A program made the translations under genes and the position numbers. A stretch of DNA of 64,000 nt from Saccostrea cucullata (lineage: Eukaryota), in assembly GCF_032062105.1 (NCBI RefSeq), contig NW_026923345.1, forward strand, positions 124,001 through 188,000, in the 5' to 3' direction. This document shows, piece after piece, positions 15,401-57,400 of this stretch. The notes under the pieces were generated by a model. That model did not search any database. It saw only the letters and a list, made by a program, of their open reading frames with translations, and was not told where the DNA came from. Every line of letters starts with the position of its first letter. Position 1 is the stretch's first letter.

Positions 15401-18400
15401 TAAGCAGAGCATCCCCTCACAAAAAGAGCACTGATCTCAATATAAATATTTTTTGATTAACTTCCCTTAAGCAAACACTCACTTACACACAGGCACATCA
15501 TCCCTCCTGTTATAACAGTAAGATAACTCACCCCTCCTCCCTGTTATAACAGTAAGATAACTCACCCCTCCTCCCTGTTATAACACTAAGATAACTCACC
15601 CCTCCTCCCTGTTATAACAGTAAGATAACTCACCCCTCCTCCCTGATATAACAGTAAGATAACTTACCCCTCCTCCCTCTTATAACAGTAAGATAACTCT
15701 CCCTTCCTCCCTGTTATAACAGTAAGATAACTCACCCCTGCTCCCTGTTATAACACTAAGATAACTCACCCCTCCTCCCTGTTATAACAGTAAGATAACT
15801 CACCCCTCCTCCCTGTTATAACAGTAAGATAACTCACCCCTCCTCCCTGTTATAACACTAAGATAACTCACCCCTCCTCCCTGTTATAACAGTAAGATAA
15901 CTCATCCCTCCTCCCTGTTACAAAAGTAAGATAACTCACCCCTCCTCCCTGTTATAACAGTAAGATAACTCACCCCTCCACCCTGTTATAACAGTAAGAT
16001 AACTCACCCCTCCTCCCTGTTATAACAGTAAGATAACTCACCCCTCCTCCCTCTTATAACAGTAAGATAACTCATCCCTCCTTTTATAACAGTAAGATAA
16101 CTCAACCCTCCTCCCTGTTATAACAGTAAGATAACTCACCCCTCCTCCCTGTTATAACAGTAAGATAGCTCAACTCTCCTCCCTGTTATAACAGTAAGAT
16201 AACTCACCCCTAACTCACCCCTCCTCCCCAGTAAGATAACCCCCCCTCCTTATAACAGTAAGATACAGTAAGATAACTCACCCCTCCTCCTTGTTGTAAC
16301 AGTAAGATAACTCACCCCTCCTCCCTGTTATAACAGTAAGATAACTCACCCCTCCTCCCTGTTATAACAGTAAGATAACTTACCCCTCCTCACTGTTATA
16401 ACAGTAAGATAACTGTTAAGATAACTCACCCCTCCTCCCTGTTATAACAGTAAGATAACTCACCCCTCCTCCCTGTTATAACAGTAAGATAACTCATCCC
16501 TCCTCCCTGTTAAAAAAGTAAGATAACTCACCCCTCCTCCCTGTTATAACAGTAAGATAACTCACCCCTGCTCCCTGTTATAACACTAAGATAACTCACC
16601 CCTCCTCCCTGTTATAACAGTAAGATAACTCACCCCTCCTCCCTGTTATAACAGTAAGATAACTCACCCCTCATCCCTGATATAACAGTAAGATGACTTA
16701 CCCCTCCTCCCTCTTATAACAGTAAGATAACTCATCCCTCCTCCCTGTTATAACACTAAGATAACTAACCCCTCCTCCCTGTTATAACAGTAAGATAGCT
16801 CACCCCTCCTCCCTGTTATAACAGTAAGATAACTTCCCCCTCCTCCCTGTTATAACAGTAAGATAACTCCCCCCTCCTCCCTGTTGTAACAGTAAGATAA
16901 CTCACCCCTCCTCCCTGTTATACCAGTAAGATAACTCCCCCCTCCTCCCTGTTGTAACAGTAAGATAGCTCAACTCTCCTCCCTGTTATAACAGTAAGAT
17001 AAGTTACCCCTCCTCCCTGTTTTAGCCAGTAAGATAAGTCATCCCTCCTCCCTGCTATAACAGTAAGATAACTCAAACCTCCTCCCTGTTATAACAGTAA
17101 GATAACTCACCCCTCCTCCCTGTTATAACAGTAAGAGACTAACCCCTCCTCTTATAACAGTAAGATAACTCATCCCTCCTCCCTGTTATAACAGTAAGAT
17201 AACTCACCCCTCCTCCCTGTTATAACAGTAAGATAACTCACCCCTCCTCCCTGTTATAACAGTAAGATAACTCATCCCTCCTCCCTGTTATAACAGTAAG
17301 ATAACTCATCCCTCCTCCCTGCTACAACAGTAAGATAACTCACCCCTCCTCCCTGTTATAACAGTAAGATAACTCACCCCTCCTCCCTGTTATAACAGTA
17401 AGGTAACTCATCCCTCCTCCCTGCTACAACAGTAAGATAACTCACCCCTCCTCCCTGTTATAACAGTAAGATAACTCACCCCTCCTCCCTGTTATAACAG
17501 TAAGATAACTCACCCCTCCTTCCTGTTATAACAGTAAGATAACTCATCCCTCCTCCGTGTTGTAACTAGTAAGATAACTCACCCCTCCTCCCTGTTATAA
17601 CAGTAAGATAACTCACCCCTCCTCCCTGTTGTAACAGTAAGATAACTCACCCCTCCTCCCTGTTATAACACTAAGATAACTAACCCCTCCTCCCTGTTAT
17701 AACAGTAAGATAACTCACCCCTCCTCCCTGTTATAACAGTAAGATAACTCACCCCTCCTCCCTGTTATAACAGTAAGATAACTCACCCCTCCTCCCTGTT
17801 GTAACCAGTAAGACAACCACCAGCTAGTTCCTGTTGACACAGCTATACTGATGATGTAGACCAACAGAACAACAAAACACACAATAAATCCCCCCGCTGC
17901 CTTCATGTAGGTGCCATAAGTATGGAAATTCACTTTCCCTTTTCTAGTTTCCTCTGCTACAATCAGTTTTCCCTCTGAAAGGAAGGTAAACAAGAAACAA
18001 TTTATGATCAGAATTTTTTTTTTTTAAATTACATCAACTGAAAACAAATTATGAATTTATATTTTTCATAGATTTATTATCTATCACATGTACATTTTTG
18101 TGCATGAATGTATCTACATACATGTATCTGACAGTACCATTACATTGACACTAGGAAGTGATGATTCAATGTCACAATTCTTTTTGTACATTAAAACAAA
18201 GAAAGTATTTCATGCATTAAAGATATAGTAGAAGCAAAATATAATTATCGGGTAAAATGCCCTGATCTTACTGTTTGTTTTCTCCTCCTGTGTGTTGCTG
18301 ATGACAGACACCTGTTTATCCACCCCTGGGGGATCTCTACCCCCTGAGTCCAGTACCCCTGACTGTGACTTTGGACTCATGGACAGCTCGGATTCCCCAG

Positions 18401-43228: not shown

Positions 43229-44856
43229 AAACAAGAGGCTCACGGGCCTTATAGATCACCTGAGTATCACGTAACAGCTTTCCAACAATTGAATTTTGGT
43301 TTACGTTTTAATCCAAAGGCCATGAAATTCATAATTTTGAAAGAGGCACCATTGTTTATCATAATTAGACACTTAGCATGCTTACTTTGACTACTTAATA
43401 CCCAGAGGTAGATCAGAGTATGAAAATTAGCGACATCAATCAACCAAACTTGTAAGAGATTTATTAGGACCTGACACCCCAAACCACACTTATAGTAGAT
43501 ATATATATTTTTTTTTTGCATAGAGCAGATAAATTTGAATTATGCAAGTAGTTAAGTAGTTGTAGAGTGTTTCGCTGTTAAGTATAGCCTCATCAGGGGT
43601 CACAGACATAAATCATGATGTTCATTTTAGGTGAGACCTGATTATCTCGTCACCTACGTTCTTGTGTTTGCTGTAAACAATAAATATGATTGGTTGAGAA
43701 TTAAATAAAATTGTGCATTCTGGATTTCTAAGAATGACATTCCAATATTTCAGAATTCGTTTTTTTCAGTCTTTATATGCAAGGGTTAAATTTAGTAAAC
43801 CGTGAAATGCATTTCCACTTTATAACAACCAGTTGTGCACCCCACCCCACAGGAACCACTGAGCTTGGGGCCACGTATTTCAAAATTTTATCATAAATTT
43901 TATTTGATCATAAATGTTGATTAATACCCAATTTCAAAGCAGATTTCAAAGCATTAATATATTTTCAGACTATGAAACCAACTAACCCCCATATCCCTGA
44001 CCCAGGGGCCCTGAAATTAACCATTTTGGAAGAGGCACCTTTCTTCATCATAAATATGTACTTAGATCATTGGCATATAATACCCAGGAGCAAAGGAAAA
44101 GATTTTCATAGAATTCATGCATTTTCACTTTTTATCATTAGAGCCCCACCCTAACACCAGAACCCCTGACCCAGGGGCCCTGAAATTCACAAATTGAAAG
44201 AAGCATCCTTCCTCATCATTACTGTGTACATGTACATAGTTCATTGGTTTAATACCAAGGAAGAGAAGAGAAGATTTTTCAAAAAATTTTTGTATTTTCA
44301 CCATATAATCAATAGAGCCCCACCCTACCAACAGAACCACTGACCCAGGGGCCATGAAATTCACAATTTTAGAAGAGGCATTCTTCCATGCTCATTATAA
44401 CTATATGTACATGTACTTGGTTAGTTTGTTTAATACCCAGGAGCAGAGAAGAAGATTTTCAAAGAATTTATGCAGTTTTCAGTTATAATCAATAGCTAGA
44501 GCCCCACCCTAACACCAGAACCCCTGACCTTGTGGCTATGAAATTCATAATTTTGGTAGAGGACTCAATGCTGATTACAATCATGCCAACAATCTGACTG
44601 CTTAATGTCCAGCCGAGCAAAGGAGAAAATGTTTAAATATTGCATTAAATTTAGTGGTTTTGGCCCCAACCCTCAAGTCCCAGGGGGCAGGGCCTATGAA
44701 ATATCACAATTTTTGTTCCCCTTTACCCATAGATGCTTTGTGCGTTGAATATGGTTGAGCGGTTGCAGAGAAGAAGTTAAAATTGTTCAAATGTTAACAC
44801 ATGATGGATGTTGACGCTCCACGACAAGAAACGGATACCAATAGGTCACCTGAGTT
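43229..44856 (+). mobile_element. Helentron-type non-autonomous element with ~175-bp internal tandem units
   Basis: Same ends as 32798-33583; repeated agagccccaccctaacaccagaacccctgacccagggg. Confidence 0.7.
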
Positions 44857-45107
44857 TACATGTACCAAGGGCCACAACTCTCACAATTACAAATGGTAAA
44901 TACTTAAACCTTTAAATATTGAAAATTTAACTTTGGCCATTTCAACAATTTTATTAATTTCTCTTAATTTATACCCTTTTAAGCAGGTTTAGCCAATCTT
45001 GAATTCTCTATACCCAAGGATACTTTGTGCAAAGCTTGGTTGAAATTGGCTGAAATCTCTTTAAGTGAACCACAAAGGAGCTAATAACAAACTACATACA
45101 GGCATCG

Positions 45108-46879
45108 CCCAAGTCAAAGTGAACTGCTTATTTTAGCAGTTTATAAACAGTTATTAGGCAGTCTGGCAATTTTTTGGCAGTTTTTAGGCAGTTCTTAACA
45201 GTCTTAGTCTTAGCATTCCTTAAAACTGCTTACAGACTGGTTAAAAAACTGCTAAGAATTTGTGTAAGCAGTTCAGTATTGAACAAACTCAAGCAGTCAA
45301 ACAAGCAGTTTCTCAAAACTGCTAAAAGTGCAACTAATTCATTTCGACTTACAAGAAGTAATACAACACTTTTTCACTCTTGGTGGTCCTAACTTTCACT
45401 AGCCTTTATGTTCTTAGTGTAGTCTACTATCATTACTGCCCATGTGTTACTGTTAATGCTTCCTGATGATAACATCACAAATAGGTGGGGGCCAGGCAGG
45501 AGTTTCTTATACAGAAAATAAAATTAAAAAGAAAAAAATATATCCTAAAAATCTTACTAGAAATGATACAATAGTTTATAATAAATTGAGGCTTCATATT
45601 ATAAAAAGCAAGTGCATATGAGCTTCTAATCTTTATCCCATCAACTTGCAAATCCAGTCCTCTAGTTACATTAACAACCTGCTGTGTCCCCCTTGGTTGC
45701 TTGAAACGAAAGGGTTGTATCCAATGAGGAAAGCCAGTCAAGATTTGTGCGCCTTTTCCACATCAGTTCAAAATTACAAATTGTGAAGATGTTTGTGATG
45801 GTCTGGAATATTATATATATTTATACCCATACAGTGAAGAAGTAAAATAGGCTTTGGAAAATACAATTATCTGTGATCACCACATTGGATTGGATGTGAA
45901 CATAATATTTAGTGACAATTAAGTGTATCTGAATTAATTTCCATGAGATGGGAGATCATTATTATAAAAATCTGGTCATACATGCATATAGCAACAATGG
46001 AATTGGGTGATAGGAAAATTTTTAAAAGATTTGTTGGCAGTAAAGTATGCTTCAGAAAATATGGTAAGTGTGAGGGCTTGTGATATATTTATAGTCATCC
46101 CCTCTCTCATTTTGGATAACTATTAAATAATAAAATGTATAATCTAGTTTGTATTTTAATTCTTTGTACTTAATATAAATTCAAAATATTTGCAGATAAA
46201 TTTAAGCTACCGATAGAGGGATCTGTAGATTAGTCCACTGTATTAACAAAGCTCTAAAGTTGCCACTCGTTTATGCACGAAAATGGACTTAATGAAATGA
46301 CTTATTTACAATTCATACCTGATCTAAATCTCAATACTAATTAAGTTAAATTCCCATATGTGATGTTATTTTTTCAATAAATCACCCTGGAAGCATCATA
46401 AAATTATATGCATTTTTGTATTCATATATTATGTACCATATATGGGTGGTGTTATCTTCTTATAAGTAGACAAGAATAGTGCTTATAGCATTTTTTTTAC
46501 CGGTTTTTATAAAGCAGTTAATAAATTTTCAAATTTATATGTAGGTCACTCAGAGTCATTTCCATATAAGTAGCGCAAACGAAAGGAAACACCTTTAGCA
46601 GTTGTTTAGCAGTTTTTAAGCAGTTCTCCTTAACCTTCCTATTGACTGCTAAGATACTGCTATTAGGAAACTGCTAAGCAACTGCTAAGTTACTGCTAAT
46701 GAACTGGCTAAGTACTGCTTAAATTGTGGACTGCTACTTGAAAACTGCCTAATGATCAGTATGACAAAAACCTTCTTCCACCAAAAGGAGAAGGCTAGTA
46801 AACTGTCTAAGAACTGCTAAAGCACTGAACTGTTAAGGTTAAAAAACTGCTAAAGAACTGCCTTCCACTTTGACTTGGG
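45108..46879. mobile_element. Non-autonomous CACTA/EnSpm-like DNA transposon
   Basis: 14-bp TIR cccaagtcaaagtg / cactttgacttggg; dense subterminal agcagtt/aactgct motifs at both ends; TSD unclear. Confidence 0.6.
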
Positions 46880-46924
46880 GATCATCACATCAAACATGCA
46901 TGAGTAAAAACAAATTTACATTAA

Positions 46925-48136
46925 GGGGGGACCTATGTCTGAAAAGTCTTTGTGTGAAATTTTCGAAATTTTGATATTTCCTTCCAGACCACTTGCTCTT
47001 AATTTTTAGGTATTAAAAACAATACCTTTATATGCTTATTTTTACACGGGAGCACGTGCCAAAACAGTGTGAAATGCTAAAAATAGATTATTTTCAGTCA
47101 TTATTGTTCTTCCCCAAATATGCGCTAAAAAGAACCAAAAATGTCAAATCATATTCAAAATCAGCACTTATTTAATTTATATGACTTGTATCTTTAAAAT
47201 GGAGGCAAATTCATTGAAATCCATCTCGCATGAAAAATTATAATGGAGCACAATGTAAGTATTACCCAATTTTTCTTGTCGTATTTTTTACAATTCCGAC
47301 ATGCATAACAGGTAATATCTTAAAAAGTCTTTGTGTGAAAATTTTGTAATTCATGTTTTTTGAAAGAAATGATTCGTCTCTTTATTTCAACAAAGAAAAA
47401 AGTATACCTTTATGATAAAATAAACGAGAAATATGACGTTTCCTTTTATTTTTGTACTCTTGTGTCATAAATATTGACCTTTCTGCACTAAAAAAGGGTA
47501 AGTAAGCACTGACAAATACCTGAATATAAAACTATTTTGCGGAAAAAGAGTATTTTGTTTTGATTAGAAACAATTTAAATAGATAATTTTTTTTCTACAT
47601 TCCATTCATTCTGTTTCTCTCTCCCCCCCCCCCCCATTTCCCCGTCAACAAACAATGCCTATTAGAACCTAGGAATGACTTTATACAATAAAATCTACAT
47701 GTACTATATAAATCAATGAGCAAATATACACCCGTACAAGTACATTTCTTAATTTTTTTCTTAGTTTTCTCCAGAAAATCGATTAATGGTAATTATAAAA
47801 TTAAACATTTTCCCCTGATTTAAGCCGCTTTCTTTCCTGAATTTTATCTCTTTTTTGCACTATTATATCAGCATATTATCGGGGTATTTTTTCACAACAG
47901 AAATTGCTATGAATTATCAACCAAATGAAGAGAATTCTAATATTAACAAACTCCATAAATCAAATAAAACTGTGATTAATATTGAATAAATTTTCCTATT
48001 TGTAAATTTTGTACGTAATTGATTATCAACAATGTTATGCCTATATCACAGTTGCAAAAGTCAACAGGTAAAAACAAACGTCTCTATTGTGACGTCACAT
48101 AACGCTGCCTTGACGTAGAACGACATAGGTCCCCCC
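46925..48136. mobile_element. TTAA-targeting non-autonomous transposon with purine-start ends (Kolobok- or Sola3-like)
   Basis: ttaa|ggggggacctatgtc ... gacataggtcccccc|ttaa. Confidence 0.75.
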
Positions 48137-49154
48137 TTAAGGCATCTTGTTAGGTATAAGTTAGGCAAAGTCTCAAATCCCTAGAGGGATCGTCCAACAG
48201 GAAAAAACTTGCTCAAAAAACAAATCTATATATAGTCTCTCCTTCTGAAATTATAGGTATACCCTTTTGTAAGAATTTTAACTTTAGATTAATTTGTGTG
48301 GATTTGATTTTGCACGAACCTTGTGTTATAAAGCAGTATTATTTTTGGTATATCTGGTAGTGAACATTCCCAGATTGAACATGGGTTTAATGCAGGTATG
48401 GCTTTTGTTGCTTGAACATAGACCTGGTGACACTCCTTAACTGAAACTCCCTATATAACCTTAACTTAAAGGTGAACTAGAAAGGAATTTGAGACTGCTG
48501 CACACAAAATCCTAAGTCCAGGTACAAGTTCAAATTTTGAATATGAAGACTTAGTAATACAGAATAGATTTATTTCATAATTCATTTACATGTATGTATG
48601 TTTAGAGTAAATACCGGTAAAAGCACTATGAAAACAAGAATGTGTTTGTGAAAAACTGATGCCCTCATATGGCAGCTCATGGCAAAAGTAAGTGTTTCAA
48701 AAGTAGGTCAAACTTAAGGCTGTCAGGTTAAAAGTGTGGTGACCAAAGAAGGTGATGTCCAAAGAATACATAAGTGAAATATGAAAGCCCAGTTGCACCA
48801 ACCATTCAAAAGATAAAGTTTTACTTAAGTACATGTTGGTCAAACATAATGAATTCTAAACTGCATGTGTGAGGTAAAAAAAAAAAGAAAGACAATGTTA
48901 CAATTAAGGGATGCAAATGAAATATGAAATCCTTAAAACCGTCTGTTCAAAAGTTATGGCCAAAGTTAATTTTGCAGACACTCACAGAGAAAGGAATAGA
49001 GTCAATAGACTAAAAACTATACACTTTCAGATCTCCAATAATGGAGGTAAAATAAAGAATCATACATGTATTATAACAATCACATTATTTAATAATTTTT
49101 TATCATGTAAAGTTCTGTGGTAATAAAATATACTCTGGTTATATATTATACAAA

Positions 49155-50672
49155 ACTAGAAAACTGACCAGTCAGCATTGAGGGCCCCGCCATGGGGTAG
49201 AATTAAAAAATACTAAAATCTAAAAATTTTTTGAATACAACCAGCAACTGTATTCTTAAAATTTCAAGATAATTCCTGAATATTCAAAAACCTGAAAATA
49301 ATATCCTTGTATTTACATTAGCCCATAAAACAACTTAAAATTGAATGTATATTTAAACAATTATGAAGCTTATGTTTATAAAATGGATTCAATGAAAAAA
49401 TATCATGAAGGCTTAAAACAGCAGTTTGCAAAGGTTTTCATTAATCTTAAAGTGACACTTATAGAAAATTAATTTTGGCAGCATTATGATATTAATTCAA
49501 GGGATTAATTATACTCTCTCATCATTTTCTTCTTATATATATGCCACAAACAAAATATAATGTACTTTATATATATTTTTTGAATGATTTTCTTTGAAAT
49601 GACATAAATAATAAATCTGAAATATAAAGAAATCGCAGGTTTTCCTCTGCAACATGTAGATTTTATGTCTATATAATTCCATGAAATTTTTGACAATTTT
49701 TTAACCTTATCACAAAATCTGATATAATTTAGAATCTAACTTGGTAAACAGGTTCAGGTTGTCAATTTAAATGTAAATCTATGAGAAATAATGCTGATTT
49801 CTGAAAAAAGTTTGTTTGTGTTATTCATCCTTAAGTTACAATAAGAACTTTTTCAGTATTTGTCCTGTTTTATACAACTATCCTAAAAATTAATAATATT
49901 CTTGAATTAACATAAAGTGAAAAAAGTAAATCAAAAAATCTTCTTTAATCTATTTCTTGTTATTAGAATTCAATGAAATCATAACTATAAAACAAAAATA
50001 AATTATAAAAAATTATATTTAAATCCACATTTCAGAGTGTTCATAGCATTCCAAATTGACTTAACTTCAAAACAAACTTCATTTGCAGACAGAGGTGGTA
50101 ATTCATCTCAATTTCACAGATAAAGGTAATGCTCTGGATTTTCTTCAGGAGGAAAGCTAATTAATCCCAAGGGACTCATAGCAGCATTCAATTTACAATG
50201 GGAACATCTTCAGCAGTTATCTCTCTTTGCCAATGCTTTCGTAAATAAAGTTAAGGAATCTACCCCACCACCCCAGCTCCAAACCAGGGGACATAGAGAA
50301 CCAAACTTAGCATCAAAATATGTATTTCTGCCTACTGAACTAACATACCAAATTTGTACTTGATTGGGCAACCATAAAAAAAAGTTGCCCATTCATTCTT
50401 ATGCATAGTTAAGGAATCTACCCCACCACCCCATCTCCAAACCAGAAGACATAGAGAACCAAACTTAGCATCAAAATATGTATTTCTGCCTACTGAACTA
50501 TCATACCAAATTTGAACTTGACTGGGCAACCATAAAAAAAGTTATTAGAAAAAAACAGAAAATTTGTGGACGGAAGAGTGACAGACGGACAGACAGACAG
50601 ACAGACAGACGGACAGACGGACGGACAGAGTGATTACTATAGGGCACCCGCAAATCCTTGCGGGGCCCTAAT
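49155..50672 (+). mobile_element. Helentron-like ends (aactag...gggccccgc / ccgcaaatccttgcggggcccta) with ~138-bp tandem pair and (GACA/GACG)n
   Basis: Terminal hairpin 50642-50670, microsatellite 50580-50630, duplicated unit 50249-50540; 49200-49570 resembles 50700-51030. Confidence 0.55.
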
Positions 50673-51225
50673 AAACATGTTTTATCACGAACACCAGGTA
50701 TAACAAAAAATACTAAAATCTAAGAACTTTTTTGTACAACCACCAATAGATTACCAGTTTGAGGACATTTATAAAAAAAATGTACAGATGACCTCACTGG
50801 GAAAAAATATTATGCCCATAAAACATACATATTGTCATTTTTAAATATCATGGTTATTGGATTCATGAAAAAAAAACAAGGGCTAATGCATAGTTTGCAA
50901 GGGAATTTCATTTCAAACATCTCACTTATACAAATTAATGGAAGACATTATGATATTTTCAATACATATACAGCTCCTTTTCAATTATATATATGCCCCA
51001 ATGTAAATATAAAGTACTTTAATAATTTGTTACTACATTCTCTGTACCACTAATATGTTATCTAATTAGCTCTGGACTCTGCTACATGTAACATGTCAAC
51101 ATGAGATACAGTGTAAACAGTTTCTCACTGCTAAAGAACTCTATCTTGGACAACCACAACAATATGACATTTAGAAAAAAAAATATTATAATAATATGTC
51201 AGAACACAAGACTAGTATTCCGGGA

Positions 51226-51461
51226 CACTCAGAAGTTTACCACTTGTCCTGTTTGGTACCACTCAGAAATTTACCACTTGTCCCACTGGTACCACTCAGA
51301 AGTTCACCACTTGTCCTGTTTGGTACCACTCAGAAGTTCACCACTTGTCCTGTTTGGTACCACTCAGAAGTTCACCACTTGTCCTGTTTGGTACCACTCA
51401 GAAGTTCACCACTTGTCCTGTTTGGTACCACTCAGAAGTTCACCACTTGTCCTGTTTGGTA
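51226..51461 (-). repeat. 34-bp minisatellite, 7 copies, made of the last codons plus stop codon of the oxidoreductase
   Basis: Unit on - strand TACCAAACAGGACAAGTGGTGAACTTCTGAGTGG = YQTGQVVNF* plus 4 nt. Confidence 0.95.
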
Positions 51462-54400
51462 AGACTCCACTGCTTTATCTATGATCTGGGACACCATTAA
51501 GCATTCTTCTTTTGTTATAAGAGGTTTAACTTCACCTAAAAGTATTCAACAGCACCTTAGTTAATTAAAGCATTTCATTGTGAAATTCTGAGTTCTCATA
51601 TACATGGATACAATAACACATGCCATTAATATTGTCTAACATCACAAGTACAAATTTGTCAGTGTTAAGGTTTAATTATATACAAAAGCTATTATAGTAG
51701 ATCTTAGTCTTTTTAAAACTTGGCCAATGTCTATAAATTTTGTATTTTAGGAATAAAATGCAAATCTCATTCACTTCCCTATTCTAACTAAATCAACACA
51801 TTGTACCATATAATACACATGGTCCAAACGAAAGATCAAGAAGATCATCACAAACACAAGTACATCTTTTTTACTGGATTTAAGAAGTTTTTTTTTTAAA
51901 TATTAAGGACCCCCCTTCCAACTCAAAGACACAGGGATTATTATTTTCTAATAAACAATTGTAATTTGTTTCCCTGGAAATGGAATATTAAAAGACATAA
52001 TCAGCCATTATGGTTACCTATGATTATCTCAAGAGTTTTTACAGAAACTGTTTCAGTAAAACATACTTATAGTAAAGACTAAAGGAACATGAACAATTCT
52101 GATTCATCATAAATGTAATTCATTATTCATGTAAACAAGTTTATAATGATTTTCAAAACCACAGAGAATGAAAATCACTTAGCTGGATAAGGGATGAATT
52201 CATAACTACCTGCAAGACAGCTATAGAAATGGGACACAGCAGTTGCAAAAGCTTTCTCAAATCTCTGGGGGAAGGAGTAATGTAGCGGGGGCATATTTGA
52301 GCCCTCTAAATAATCCACACAGAATGAGGACCTCCGAGGGTTGTCGGCCATTGCCATTCCCTTTGTACCAAATAACTACAAAAAATTAAATATAGCAGTA
52401 AAATAAATCTCTGCAATAATATATTTCATATGGATGAAAACAAGATGTGTTTCATGGTGGAGGTTCATGTTTCTCAAATGTGAGTCAAATTCCAAGGAAA
52501 AGAGTGCATAAATGTTGAAATCTAAAGAAAGTCTTGTTACAAGGAAATGAAAGCCCTAGTTATAGCCAAGATAAAAATTTAGTAAACTTTTTTAAAAATG
52601 GGTCAAACTTCAAGGTCAAGAGTCAAATATGTTGGTACTAAAAGGTAGGTCTTGTCACAAGAAATATACAAATCAAATATGAAAGCCACAGTTTCAGTTT
52701 CGGGCAAGACCCGACAAGTTAAAAGTTTTTGAGGACAAATAGATAAGGCCATAATAAAAATATTCCTAGATTCTCATCCCCGCCCGCCCCGATTTTATAC
52801 CCCCGCCTCGATTTTTTTTATTTCTGTTTTTCTTCATCTTAATTCTGATCGGGATCGGTATTCATCTACCATTCTACTTTCGTTTTTAATCCCGCGAAAG
52901 TCAACATGATTTTGACAGCTGAAAAGACGGTGTAATACATGCATATATATTTTGAACAGGGGTCATTGGTTGAAAAAGATTGGTGAAGATGTGAAGTAAG
53001 AGAATCAGATAATTGAACCTTTACTTTGACTTTTATTCGGGTATTGTAGATAAAATTACACCGATTGACCAGGTCAATAAAAAATCTACAAAATTGAAAA
53101 AATAAAAAATATAAAAATAAAAGCCGCCCGCCCGCCTCGATTTTTAAAAAAATTCAGATGAGAATCTAGCAATTTATTTATTATGGCCTAAATAAACAAA
53201 TGGATGGATAGAACAAACATTAGGTAATCAGAGGTTATAACAGAGCTCACCTCAACGAATGTTGTCATAGCCATATACACACTCTCTAAACATACCTCAG
53301 CTCTGATATCGTAACGCCAAATTCACAAAAATGAGCTAAACATAGTTTCACAGTCATAAACTCATTCAATTGCTAAACTATAGTTTACGGACTGTAAACT
53401 ATAGTTAACAACGTTAATCTATATTTAACATATGTAAACCATTAGTTAACGTGATAATCTATGTTTCAGAATCGTAAACTATACTTAACACTGAAAACAA
53501 TCATTTGCGATTGCAAAACATAGATTATCTGATAAATACAGTTTCACAATTTGTAAACTATGGTTTACAACTCTTTAGTTAATGATCTGATAAATATAGT
53601 TTCACGATTTGTGAAACTATGATTAACAACTCTTAACTATATAGTTCACGGTTGTAAATTATAGTTTACAGACATGTATCTATGATTATCAACAAAATCT
53701 ATTATTAACGTTTTATTACAGACAGATAAACTAAGATGAATTCAAACTATAGTTAACAACTGTTAAATATAGTTTTACAGATATATAAGTTAACGAATTG
53801 TTAACTATTGTTCATGGTTTGTAAACTATAGTTTACAGTCGATAAACCTAGTTTATCAACTGTGAAACTATGTTTATAGCTCATTTCTGTGAATTTGGCT
53901 TGCCATACATATATACACACTCTCTGAACATACCTCAGCTCTGATGTCATAACCATATACACACTCTCTAAACTAACCTCAGCTCTGATATCATAGCCCT
54001 ATAAACACTCTATAAACATACCTCAGCTCTGATATCGTAGCCGTATACACACTCTCTGAACACATCAATGGTGGCAATCATTCCATTTTCAAACTTTACA
54101 CAAATGACCCCAGCATCAGGCTCCTTAATCTTCTGAAGCATCTCGTCTCGGATATGTGTCATGACAAACACTGATCTTGGCTTAGAACAGGATGTTAACC
54201 AAACCATCATGTCAACGTCATGTACGGCCATGTCAGAAATCAGGTTACAACCAGTGCTGTCTAAATATAAGCAACAGATTTAATTACATTACTTATAGGT
54301 AAAAGTTTGGAGTTCAGAACATATAATTGCAAAAATTTTTTAAAAAGATCTATGAAATATATTACCGTATAAGTAGAATTTTTAGCGAGGATTTAATTTT

Positions 54401-57400
54401 GGCATTATTAGCGATGGTGCAATTGAATATCACTAAAAATTAATTGCGTATTATTTGTATAAGTTTCTTTAGTTATTATTTTAAAATCGCTAAAATAACT
54501 TATCGCTAAAAATAAAATACCAGATTTTAGGTAGAAATCGCTAAATTTGCATCTCGCTAAAATTTCCACTGATACAGCATCTCTTTGGCAACGGGAAAGG
54601 GGGGGGGCAGGTAATTTAAAAGAGGCTTATGTCATCTGAATCCATTTTTATGTTCACGAATATTTATGCCAAATATTTTTCCCCAAAGGTTTGGGTAAAA
54701 GACTCTAAAGAATAAGTCAATTTGTGAAAATCAAACCAAAATTAGAAATATGCCCATAGGACATGAATGCCCCACCAAGGGTATATCAGTAATGCAACCT
54801 GAAAATTTGTACACATTTAATTGTATGAAGTTTGATCAGAATGTCTTGAATAGTTTCTTTAAAACTGAAATTATAATCTAAGAAATTGGATAAATATGAT
54901 TTAAATTCTCACCAAATTATGTGCAAGTGCAAAAGCTTACATAAAATATCTTAAATGATTTCTTTAAAACTAAGCGAACTGCAAATTAAAAGAAAAGTGA
55001 GGTCAAGGTGATGTCAAGAAAATATGTCAAAGGAAAATAAAAATTGACGCAGTTGAATAGCTTTCATTAATGTGTATTAGCATATGAAGTTTGATAACAC
55101 TATCTTGAATGGTTTCTTTAAAACTTAGCTAAATATTCTCATTAAAGAAGAAGAGAAACATAGGTAATCAGAGATTACAGAGCTCACCTCAACGAATGTT
55201 GTCTTTAAGTTAGACAAAGTCACACAATTAACCAACAAAAAATGTACATCCAAAAATGCAAAATTTTTGCAATTTTGATCTGATACTTTGGAATAGATCT
55301 ATATAAAAACTTTAACCTAGTTCTTCGTCATGAAAATGTAATTAAAATCCAGCATCTGAAGCAAGTTTGAGAGTTTTCATCCCTTGATGCATCATTTTTG
55401 CAAGTTTGGTTTATATAAGCCTTAGAGTTTCTTGGTAATAGACCTGCACCCATAACTTTTACCTAGTCAATTATCTGGAAACTGTATGTCGAATTCAGAA
55501 TTCGAAGCAAGTCCATTAGTGTGCATCCTAAGATGTATCATCCATGCAAGTTGCTCAACATAGGGCTCATAGTTACTTGGAAATGAGACCTGCACCAAAA
55601 ATGTTAACCTGTTCACTCATGCGGAAAATGTACCGGGTAGGTCAGATTCTGCATCCAAAGCCAGCCTGGTAGAATGCATCCTTAGATGTATCATCCATGC
55701 AAATTTGGTCATTAAAGAGCTCATAGTTACTTGGAAATGAAACCTGCACCAAAAACTTTAACTTGTTCACTCATCCAGAAAATGTAGGTCAGATTCAGCA
55801 TCCGATGCCAGCCTGGTAGTATGCATCCTTAATTTATCATCCATGCAAGCTTAGTCATTATAGGGCTCATAGTAACTTGGAAATGAAACCTGCACCAAAC
55901 ACTTTAACCTGTTCACTCATCCAGAAAATGTAGGTCAGATTCAGCATCCGAAGCAAGTCTGGTAGAATGCATCCAAAGATGTATCATCCATGCTAGTTTA
56001 GTTGTAAAAGGGCTCATAGTATCTTGTAAATGAAACCTGCCCCAAAAACTTTAACTTGTTCACTCAACCAGAAAATGTAGGTCAGATTCAGCATCCGAAG
56101 CAAATCTGGTAGTATGCATCATCCATGCAAGTTTGGTCATAATAGTGCTCATAGTTACTTGTAAATGAGACCTGCACCAAAAACATTAACCTGTTCACTC
56201 ATGCGGAAAATGTAGGTCAGATTCAGCATCCGAAGCATGTCTGGTAGTGTGCATCCTAAGATGTATCATCAATGCAAGTTTGGTCAACATAGGGCTTATA
56301 GTTACTTGGAAATGAGACCTACACCAAAAACTGCAGCAAAAATGTTAACCTGCTCAAAAAACATTAAGCTGGTCATTCCTTTGCTGAAATTGCAGCATCT
56401 GAAACCTTGAATGGTACAATGAAACACACTAGAAGCATCTTCCATGCATGTCTAATCAATATAGGACATAGAAGTATACTTCAAAAGAAAACTGCTCCAA
56501 AAAACTTAACCTTAACCTGGAACGCCGACACCCACACCGAGGGTATCACATAAGCTCCCCCAACTTTGTTGAGGTGAGCTAAAAATGAAGCAATGGTAAA
56601 AGGAAGGGTCAAGGTAAAAAAATGTTGATACAGTTGAATAGCTCTCATCAACAAGTATCAGCGTATAAAGTTTATTAATACTATCTTGAATGCTTTCATT
56701 TAAACTAAGCTAAACACTTATTCAAGAAAAGTGAGTTCAAGGTCAAAGTAAATGTCAAGGATTAGAAAAATGTTGATGCAGTTGAATAGCTCTCATCAAT
56801 ATGTATCAGCATCTGAAGTCTAATAAAAATATCTTGAACAGTTTCTTTGAAACTGAGCTGAACACAAAGCAGGCCGGAAGGACAGACAGAAGATGGACAG
56901 AACAAACTCTATATGCCTCAGACATACCGGTATTCATAAAAAATATATTGACAATTTAGACATGCAATCATAAAAGCTCACTTCAGCCTTTTTACTCAGG
57001 TGAGATGAAATAAGGACAAACTTCTAACCAGCATTAGACAGGAATTCGTATGAGGGTTTAGGATTATCTCGAGAGGTGAGTCTAATTAACTGCAGCTCCC
57101 CCAAACGTCCACTCAGGGCTGTTTCTTTTAGTTCAGAAAAAGCTGAATCAAATCTCCTGAAAATGATAGAAAGGTCTATTGCAGTAAATGTTAAAAGGTC
57201 ATTAAAGTTGTTTTACTGATAAGTAAGAAAAAATATATATATATATATGCATTTCAAGTCTATATATATTACATTCCATTTTTTCCTTATCATTGTTTCA
57301 TGGACATAATTTAATACATGTAAAGAGATAAGTCACTTTGATTATTAACTAACAGACATATTTAATCAAGAGGCCTATGGGCCACATCCCTCACCTGAGT

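Follow-up and report, generated by a model that had tools for sequence, protein, structure and literature searches.

Minisatellite arrays at coding-exon boundaries in two genes of the oyster Saccostrea cucullata

Arrays at the ends of coding exons

The window analysed here is a stretch of 64,000 nucleotides (nt) from contig NW_026923345.1 of Saccostrea cucullata, and it carries two genes on the minus strand, one for an ABCC5-like transporter and one for a Gfo/Idh/MocA-type oxidoreductase. Six tandem repeat arrays lie at the 3' ends of coding exons of these genes, arrays 1 to 4 in the transporter gene and arrays 5 and 6 in the oxidoreductase gene. A first-pass annotation of the window had described them as six unrelated arrays, five at 5' splice sites (donors) and one at a stop codon, each running downstream. 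Tandem Repeats Finder (TRF) applied to the whole window recovered all of them, and reading of the junctions placed five arrays at a donor and one across a stop codon, each extending downstream in the minus-strand reading. The six are mutually unrelated in sequence and all on the minus strand, with periods of 34, 34, 39, 62, 34 and 44 bp and with 3 to 68 copies. They are listed below, with a slash marking the exon-intron junction.

Array 1, 15506-17821, minus strand: 34-bp unit, about 68 copies (TRF); in the intron after the ABCC5-like exon ending at 17787, junction GGG/GTGAGT.
Array 2, 18805-20147 (TRF block 18805-20114), minus strand: 34-bp unit, about 38 copies; exon ends at 20103, junction AAG/GTGAGT.
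Array 3, 21135-22807 and 23166-23519, minus strand: 39-bp unit, about 52 copies (TRF, two blocks); exon ends at 23521, junction CAG/GTCAGT.
Array 4, 23835-24022, minus strand: 62-bp unit, 3 copies (TRF); exon ends at 23976, junction AGG/GTAAGT.
Array 5, 51226-51461, minus strand: 34-bp unit, 7 copies (TRF); in the 3' untranslated region (UTR) of the oxidoreductase gene, stop codon TGA at 51434-51432.
Array 6, 53262-54062, minus strand, in blocks 53911-54062 and ~53262-53321: 44-bp unit, about 4.5-5 copies; exon ends at 54022, junction GAG/GTATGT.

By TRF, all six arrays are head-to-tail repeats of a unit within the range of roughly 10-160 bp that defines the 'mirage' class of minisatellites. 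The earlier description, in which each array starts at an exon boundary, holds for where the arrays are anchored but not for where they begin, as the repeats start 27-46 nt upstream of the donor and the first unit is largely exonic. Array 3 differs in beginning 6 nt inside the intron, and the short and degenerate exon contribution noted for this 39-bp array was confirmed, with a copy of the exon tail and donor that is degenerate yet recognisable. Arrays 1, 2, 4 and 6 reiterate the splice signal in the intron; array 3 has lost its donors, with no unit keeping the donor consensus, and array 5 spans the stop codon instead. If the 39 coding exons counted in the first-pass annotation are taken, the probability of finding at least six of seven arrays no more than 10 bp from the 3' end of an exon is ~3e-11.

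The composition of the units can be read directly from the junctions. The first unit of array 1 (17788-17821) is exonic, and the founder copy of array 2 is the exon tail 20104-20147, with an additional 15-nt GAG-rich insert. The array 4 unit consists of the last ~45 nt of a 72-nt exon (24047-23976) that encodes a Walker A loop, followed by GTAAGT and ~12 nt of intron, and that of array 5 consists of the final 27-28 coding nt of the oxidoreductase, the stop codon TGA and 3 nt beyond. The unit of array 6 is the exon tail ...ECVYGYDIRAE followed by GTATGTTTA; its TRF block, 53911-54062, holds 3.5 copies, and the further copy at ~53262-53321 was found by reading the sequence. Arrays 3 and 6, which had been listed as single runs, are each interrupted by a miniature inverted-repeat transposable element (MITE):

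Position ~22801-23168, inside array 3: high-copy MITE of ~370 bp with inverted-repeat self-matches; other contigs carry dozens of copies that are 95-96% identical.
Position 53314-53907, inside array 6: high-copy palindromic MITE of ~600 bp; other contigs carry more than 40 copies that are 88-90% identical, and every copy also matches itself on the reverse strand, at about 71%.

That two of the six arrays hold MITEs, of two different families, may reflect chance or a target preference.

The homology of the exons was examined exon by exon against human ABCC5 structures and Pfam. The two exons that flank array 1 align to residues 733-801 (before the array) and 795-845 (after it) of a human ABCC5 structure. 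Similarly, the exon before array 3 corresponds to ABCC5 residues 522-561, and the alignment is carried on by the next exon. The exon before array 4 contains the Walker A loop GSGKSSL and matches positions 11-33 of the Pfam family ABC_tran, and the exon before array 6 matches positions 42-117 of the 124 positions of GFO_IDH_MocA_C3, both matches reaching the end of the exon. The array 4 unit hence repeats Walker A coding sequence, and the array 6 unit closes a conserved domain. The reading frame of the last oxidoreductase exon, on which array 5 is built, ends ...ESYQTGQVVNF followed by the stop. By these alignments the repeated exon tails are conserved coding sequence, so that the array descends from the exon and not the exon from the array. 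The opposite course of events, in which an array already present in the intron was exonised, was considered and rejected on the same ground.

Relatives of the arrays and recurrence across the genome

Whole-genome DNA searches (1.17 Gb) found the six units only at the window locus, in a linked ABCC5 paralog and on an allelic contig, and array 5 had no other copy anywhere in the genome. The same unit at many unrelated loci, as expected of a satellite borne by transposable elements, was not seen for any of them in these searches, in which only the two inserted MITEs were multi-copy. The allelic contig (C15748, locus L003) is short and ends inside array 1, at ~96% identity. The paralog (locus L002, C5482:203001-212888) is an inverted copy on the opposite strand of the same contig, ~15 kb past the right end of the window, and has arrays at three donors shared with the window gene, as follows:

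Array 4: 3 copies in the window, 5.7 in the paralog (L002 4452-4789).
Array 3: about 52 copies in the window, 6 in the paralog (L002 5109-5350).
Array 2: 38 copies in the window, about 26 in the paralog (L002 6716-6813 and 7028-7799).

The contig ends before the place where array 1 would be expected in the paralog. Some paralog units of array 2 contain the same 15-nt exon insert as in the window. Exon-bearing stretches of the two genes are ~90% identical and the arrays ~83%, and copy number differs up to 8-fold between paralogous arrays. As the arrays are shared with the paralog at differing copy numbers, they are either older than the gene duplication or were copied along with it, with turnover afterwards. 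Units inside one array differ from each other by 5-14% and show substructure, a divergence not expected from assembler stutter, and the presence of the same arrays in both the paralog and the allelic contig rules out an origin in transposable elements or in misassembly.

In order to measure recurrence, patterns made of three copies of an 8-mer at a spacing of 20-50 nt were counted in the whole 1.17-Gb assembly (23869 contigs); these counts are of matches, not of arrays.

Donor pattern AGGTRAGT: 1169 matches; 420 when reversed.
Composition-matched pattern without GT, GATGRGAT: 250 matches; 227 when reversed.
Acceptor pattern TTTTYAGG: 283 matches; 207 when reversed.

The reversed donor control is contaminated, as TGAGTGGA overlaps GGTGAGTGG donors, and the GT-free, composition-matched control was added for that reason; relative to it, the triple-donor pattern is about 5 times as frequent. 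Counted as distinct arrays per contig index, the excess of the donor pattern is, as a rough estimate, ~4- to 6-fold.

The first 18 distinct donor-pattern arrays were then inspected with their flanks, a sample chosen by donor pattern and not at random. About 13 of these 18 have an open reading frame, with its tail equal to the first repeat unit, preceding the first donor. Two of the exon tails could be recognised by eye, one resembling a valyl-tRNA synthetase (transfer RNA, tRNA; ...NWSCQLQSVISDIE/GTAAGT) and the other a coenzyme A (CoA)-transferase (...DIKDDSKLLVG/GTAAGT). The sampled loci also contain about 16 bystander arrays that no pattern had selected, comprising six anchored at donors, two at acceptors (loci L010 and L020), one on a stop codon (L009 3069-3205) and one in-frame exonic array, the remainder being intronic or related to transposable elements. 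Donor-anchored arrays outnumber acceptor-anchored ones 11 to 2 when the window arrays and bystanders, neither chosen by donor pattern, are taken together. In addition, a donor motif of the AGGTR type was seen by eye in 8 of 16 arrays chosen by the control 8-mer, compared with a chance expectation of 0.146 (p=8e-4). Anchoring at exon ends thus recurs across the genome, far beyond chance.

The first-pass annotation had seen no array built on an acceptor. This is true of the window, except for a weak 19-bp repeat at 11163-11226 (3.4 copies, 75% matches) that consists of intron-tail sequence, ends at an acceptor and contains no exon sequence, but acceptor-built arrays do exist elsewhere, at L010 and L020. 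At L010 (C1556:152500-160103, gene on the minus strand), an intron of a CoA-transferase-like gene is nearly all repeat, with a 42-bp donor-anchored array followed by a 26-bp acceptor-anchored array whose unit joins TTTACAG to the start of the following exon (GFGLCG...).

Other repeats in the window are of a different kind. Arrays with periods of 147-180 bp are dispersed families that recur in unrelated loci, which bears out the earlier statement that the remaining satellites are borne by transposable elements. Families with units of ~150-180 bp lie at 31338-32170, 43995-44562 and 55305-56332 of the window and again at L008 1901-3831, L011, L013 and L014, a recurrence that fits dispersed, transposable-element-associated satellites. 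A 64-bp repeat at 8326-8542 (3.4 copies) had been noted downstream of the ABCC5 stop codon; the distance from that stop (~9497-9499) is ~960 bp, and the repeat is hence not stop-anchored. Locus L013 further contains a 48-bp unit repeated three times at 98% identity (2864-3007, C2102) that resembles part of a tRNA gene or the head of a tRNA-derived short interspersed nuclear element.

Breakpoints and the origin of the arrays

To divide each unit into exon and intron parts, a gapped alignment of the exon tail with the first unit was made, with the donor as its fixed point. By this measure the exon tail makes up most of the unit. The intron part is 6 nt or shorter in 9 of 23 donor-anchored arrays, including window arrays 1, 2 and 6, compared with ~3.6 expected if the breakpoint were uniformly distributed (p=0.005). 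Unit edges fall in microhomologies of 2-4 nt, such as that shared by the AAGT or GAGT at intron positions +3 to +6 and the exonic start of the unit, and array 5, which ends 3 nt past its TGA, has GAGT at both unit edges. Breakpoints at or before +6, together with a stop-codon array ending at +3 nt, are what would be expected from duplications centred on coding sequence and cut short because the signal has to be preserved.

No gradient in identity to the exon tail was found along arrays 1 and 2, which fits homogenisation and leaves repeated re-seeding from the exon unsupported. The motif GTRAG is kept in about 44 of the 67 units of array 1, with the GT lost in 19, and in 31 of 37 units of array 2; within the array 1 unit, no position is less conserved than the donor GT. 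As none of the periods of 34, 34, 62 and 44 bp is divisible by 3, use of the pseudo-donors would shift the reading frame.

The explanation we favour, at a probability of roughly 55%, is that these are exon-boundary minisatellites of the mirage type, produced by microhomology duplication, expansion with homogenisation, and a selective filter. The seed would be a tandem duplication of 30-65 bp, arising through microhomology-mediated slippage or template switching, that took in the final 15-45 bases of a coding exon together with the signal that terminates it, either a 5' splice site or a stop codon. Such a two-copy seed could then grow and be homogenised through unequal exchange or replication slippage. 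The authentic first donor, or stop, would presumably remain in use, leaving the downstream copies as silent intron or UTR sequence. Purifying selection would remove duplications confined to the exon and most of those spanning an acceptor, so that the surviving arrays should be those with an exonic start that reach a short way beyond the signal. Experiments on the human F7 gene showed that only the most upstream of its identical donors is used (PMC1557585), and the mirages of amphioxus leave splicing undisturbed (PMC3087553). The stop-anchored, acceptor-anchored and in-frame exonic arrays at the sampled loci count in favour of this explanation, and the first two of these indicate that what the arrays have in common is a coding-sequence edge, not a donor.

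The first-pass annotation had proposed a repeat-generating process biased to exon 3' ends, such as R-loop breaks or rolling-circle copying of junction circles, and had offered slippage plus selection, with the first donor winning, as an alternative. The positional bias stands, as anchoring far exceeds chance and recurs across the genome and donors exceed acceptors, but nothing tested points to a donor-specific process, and arrays anchored at stops and acceptors exist. The alternative fits better, and agrees with the human F7 experiments (PMC1557585).

Several observations weigh against duplication followed by filtering. A filter alone does not explain why wholly intronic, presumably neutral arrays do not predominate: among the sampled 30-70 bp minisatellites, at least about half are boundary-anchored or contain a donor motif. 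The genome-wide sample is partly biased, its loci having been chosen by donor pattern. The pile-up of breakpoints in the donor hexamer is likewise unexplained by the filter alone, and the occurrence of several arrays per gene suggests a mutational factor acting regionally or at the level of the gene.

The main idea of the first-pass annotation, a mutational hotspot at the splice donor itself, is favoured by the intronic shortfall, the breakpoint pile-up and the several arrays per gene. In this view co-transcriptional events such as U1 binding, polymerase pausing, R-loop edges or nucleosome-edge breaks would nick or break germline DNA at the donor, and repair by microhomology re-priming would duplicate the junction. 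Such a hotspot would concentrate right-hand breakpoints in the donor hexamer, as in the 9 of 23 arrays above, and produce more arrays at donors than at acceptors; several arrays per gene are expected if gene expression or chromatin matters, and boundary arrays are more frequent among minisatellites than a pure filter would allow. However, the same anatomy is found without a donor at stop codons (array 5 and the L009 array) and at the acceptors of L010 and L020, and a distribution truncated by selection also predicts the breakpoint pile-up. We consider a mutational process directed at the boundary a live rival, though clearly less probable than the filter explanation.

A broader proposal goes further. 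About half of all 30-70 bp minisatellites in this genome would have been born at coding-exon edges by boundary-directed germline mutation, leaving donor-hexamer breakpoints and clustering within genes as its traces. The arrays would then be a mark left in the DNA by splice-site recognition during transcription, common to highly polymorphic marine invertebrates, bivalves and amphioxus among them. This proposal appears unlikely at present.

Retention of the arrays for a function is quite improbable. Rows of U1 sites or copies of an exon-tail enhancer might aid exon definition, suppress intronic polyadenylation or tune expression, and both the consensus donors in most copies of arrays 1 and 2 and the survival of the arrays through a gene duplication with ~10% exon divergence are compatible with such a role. 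Intact motifs can, however, be explained by homogenisation alone, and a useful donor row is difficult to reconcile with a unit in which the donor GT is the least conserved position (array 1), with an array that has no donors remaining (array 3) or with an array on a stop codon that has no donor to repeat. The copy-number differences between paralogs and the MITEs within two of the arrays argue in the same direction.

An artefact of assembly, or mobile-element satellites adjoining exons by chance, is scarcely credible: the assembly is fragmented, with the allelic contig breaking within array 1, and the 147-180 bp arrays of the window are indeed dispersed families, but the units of the six arrays are divergent and substructured, recur in the allelic contig and a diverged paralog, have no further copies in 1.17 Gb and hold the conserved coding sequence of the adjacent exon.

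Related repeats in other animals

Repeats of the mirage type were reportedly first described by Canestro et al. in 2002 (NAR 30:2871). Amphioxus examples include Adh3, troponin C, the globins BflGb6 and BflGb9, and PGBD5 (PMC3087553, PMC3902484); the authors of these studies suspected a genome-wide phenomenon and termed its mechanism unclear. Like the oyster arrays, amphioxus mirages have a unit of 10-160 bp that spans the exon-intron boundary and reiterates the splice signal, affect both donor and acceptor boundaries and can occur several to a gene. Copy number is unstable in the amphioxus mirages, and in the oyster it differs between paralogous arrays. The oyster arrays differ in belonging to another phylum, in being far longer, with up to ~68 copies, and in including stop-codon cases, as well as in having a quantified donor excess and breakpoints clustered in the donor hexamer. 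For the amphioxus mirages, studies have demonstrated that splicing is normal and that alleles vary in length; the oyster arrays are described here from assembly sequence.

Variable number tandem repeats (VNTRs) at exon-intron borders are also known from human genes, with units of 37 bp in intervening sequence 7 (IVS7) of F7, 31 bp in CBS intron 13, 12 bp in IFI6/6-16, 100 bp in LMNB2 and 81 bp in PDGFA (PMC1557585). As in the oyster, the first monomer spans the exon-donor boundary and identical pseudo-donors lie downstream of the authentic donor; the 31-37 bp units of F7 and CBS match the oyster units of 34-39 bp, and in F7 the most upstream donor is the one chosen. The human cases are isolated, whereas the oyster arrays appear to form a common class. 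The F7 unit includes only 4 exon nt, in contrast to the oyster units, which are mostly exon tail, and the IFI6 pseudo-donors are used in frame, while use at the oyster periods would shift the frame.

A further parallel is intron gain or sliding through tandem duplication of an AGGT-containing exon segment (the Rogers model; cases in PMC2891723 and PMC4974935), as there too the tandem duplication of exon sequence yields extra splice signals. The authors of the amphioxus studies proposed mirages as raw material for new introns. In the oyster arrays, unlike in this model, the introns pre-exist and the copies merely lengthen them, and no new intron or exon formed from an array was seen at the loci examined.

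Whether such arrays had been described in bivalves was left undecided in the first-pass annotation. This kind of repeat is already known, from amphioxus and from human genes, and full-text literature searches, with most subscription journals outside their coverage, found no report from an oyster or other bivalve. What is added here is the scale, the donor excess, the stop-codon cases, the persistence across paralogs and the clustering of breakpoints. The presence of the same class in a second, distant phylum, seemingly genome-wide, suggests a phenomenon broader than the few published genes, and the oyster genome offers hundreds of loci for testing it.

These arrays have practical consequences as well. 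Gene prediction can easily be misled where dozens of consensus donors follow directly on a real one, and the same rows provide a natural test bed for 5' splice-site choice. The arrays also show why assemblies break within genes, as seen in the allelic contig that ends in array 1. If it is true that the excess at exon edges is mutational and not selective, the arrays would link transcription or splicing to instability of germline DNA.

Finally, a period of exactly 34 bp is common to arrays 1, 2 and 5 despite their unrelated sequences; in the published human examples the units measure 31 and 37 bp.

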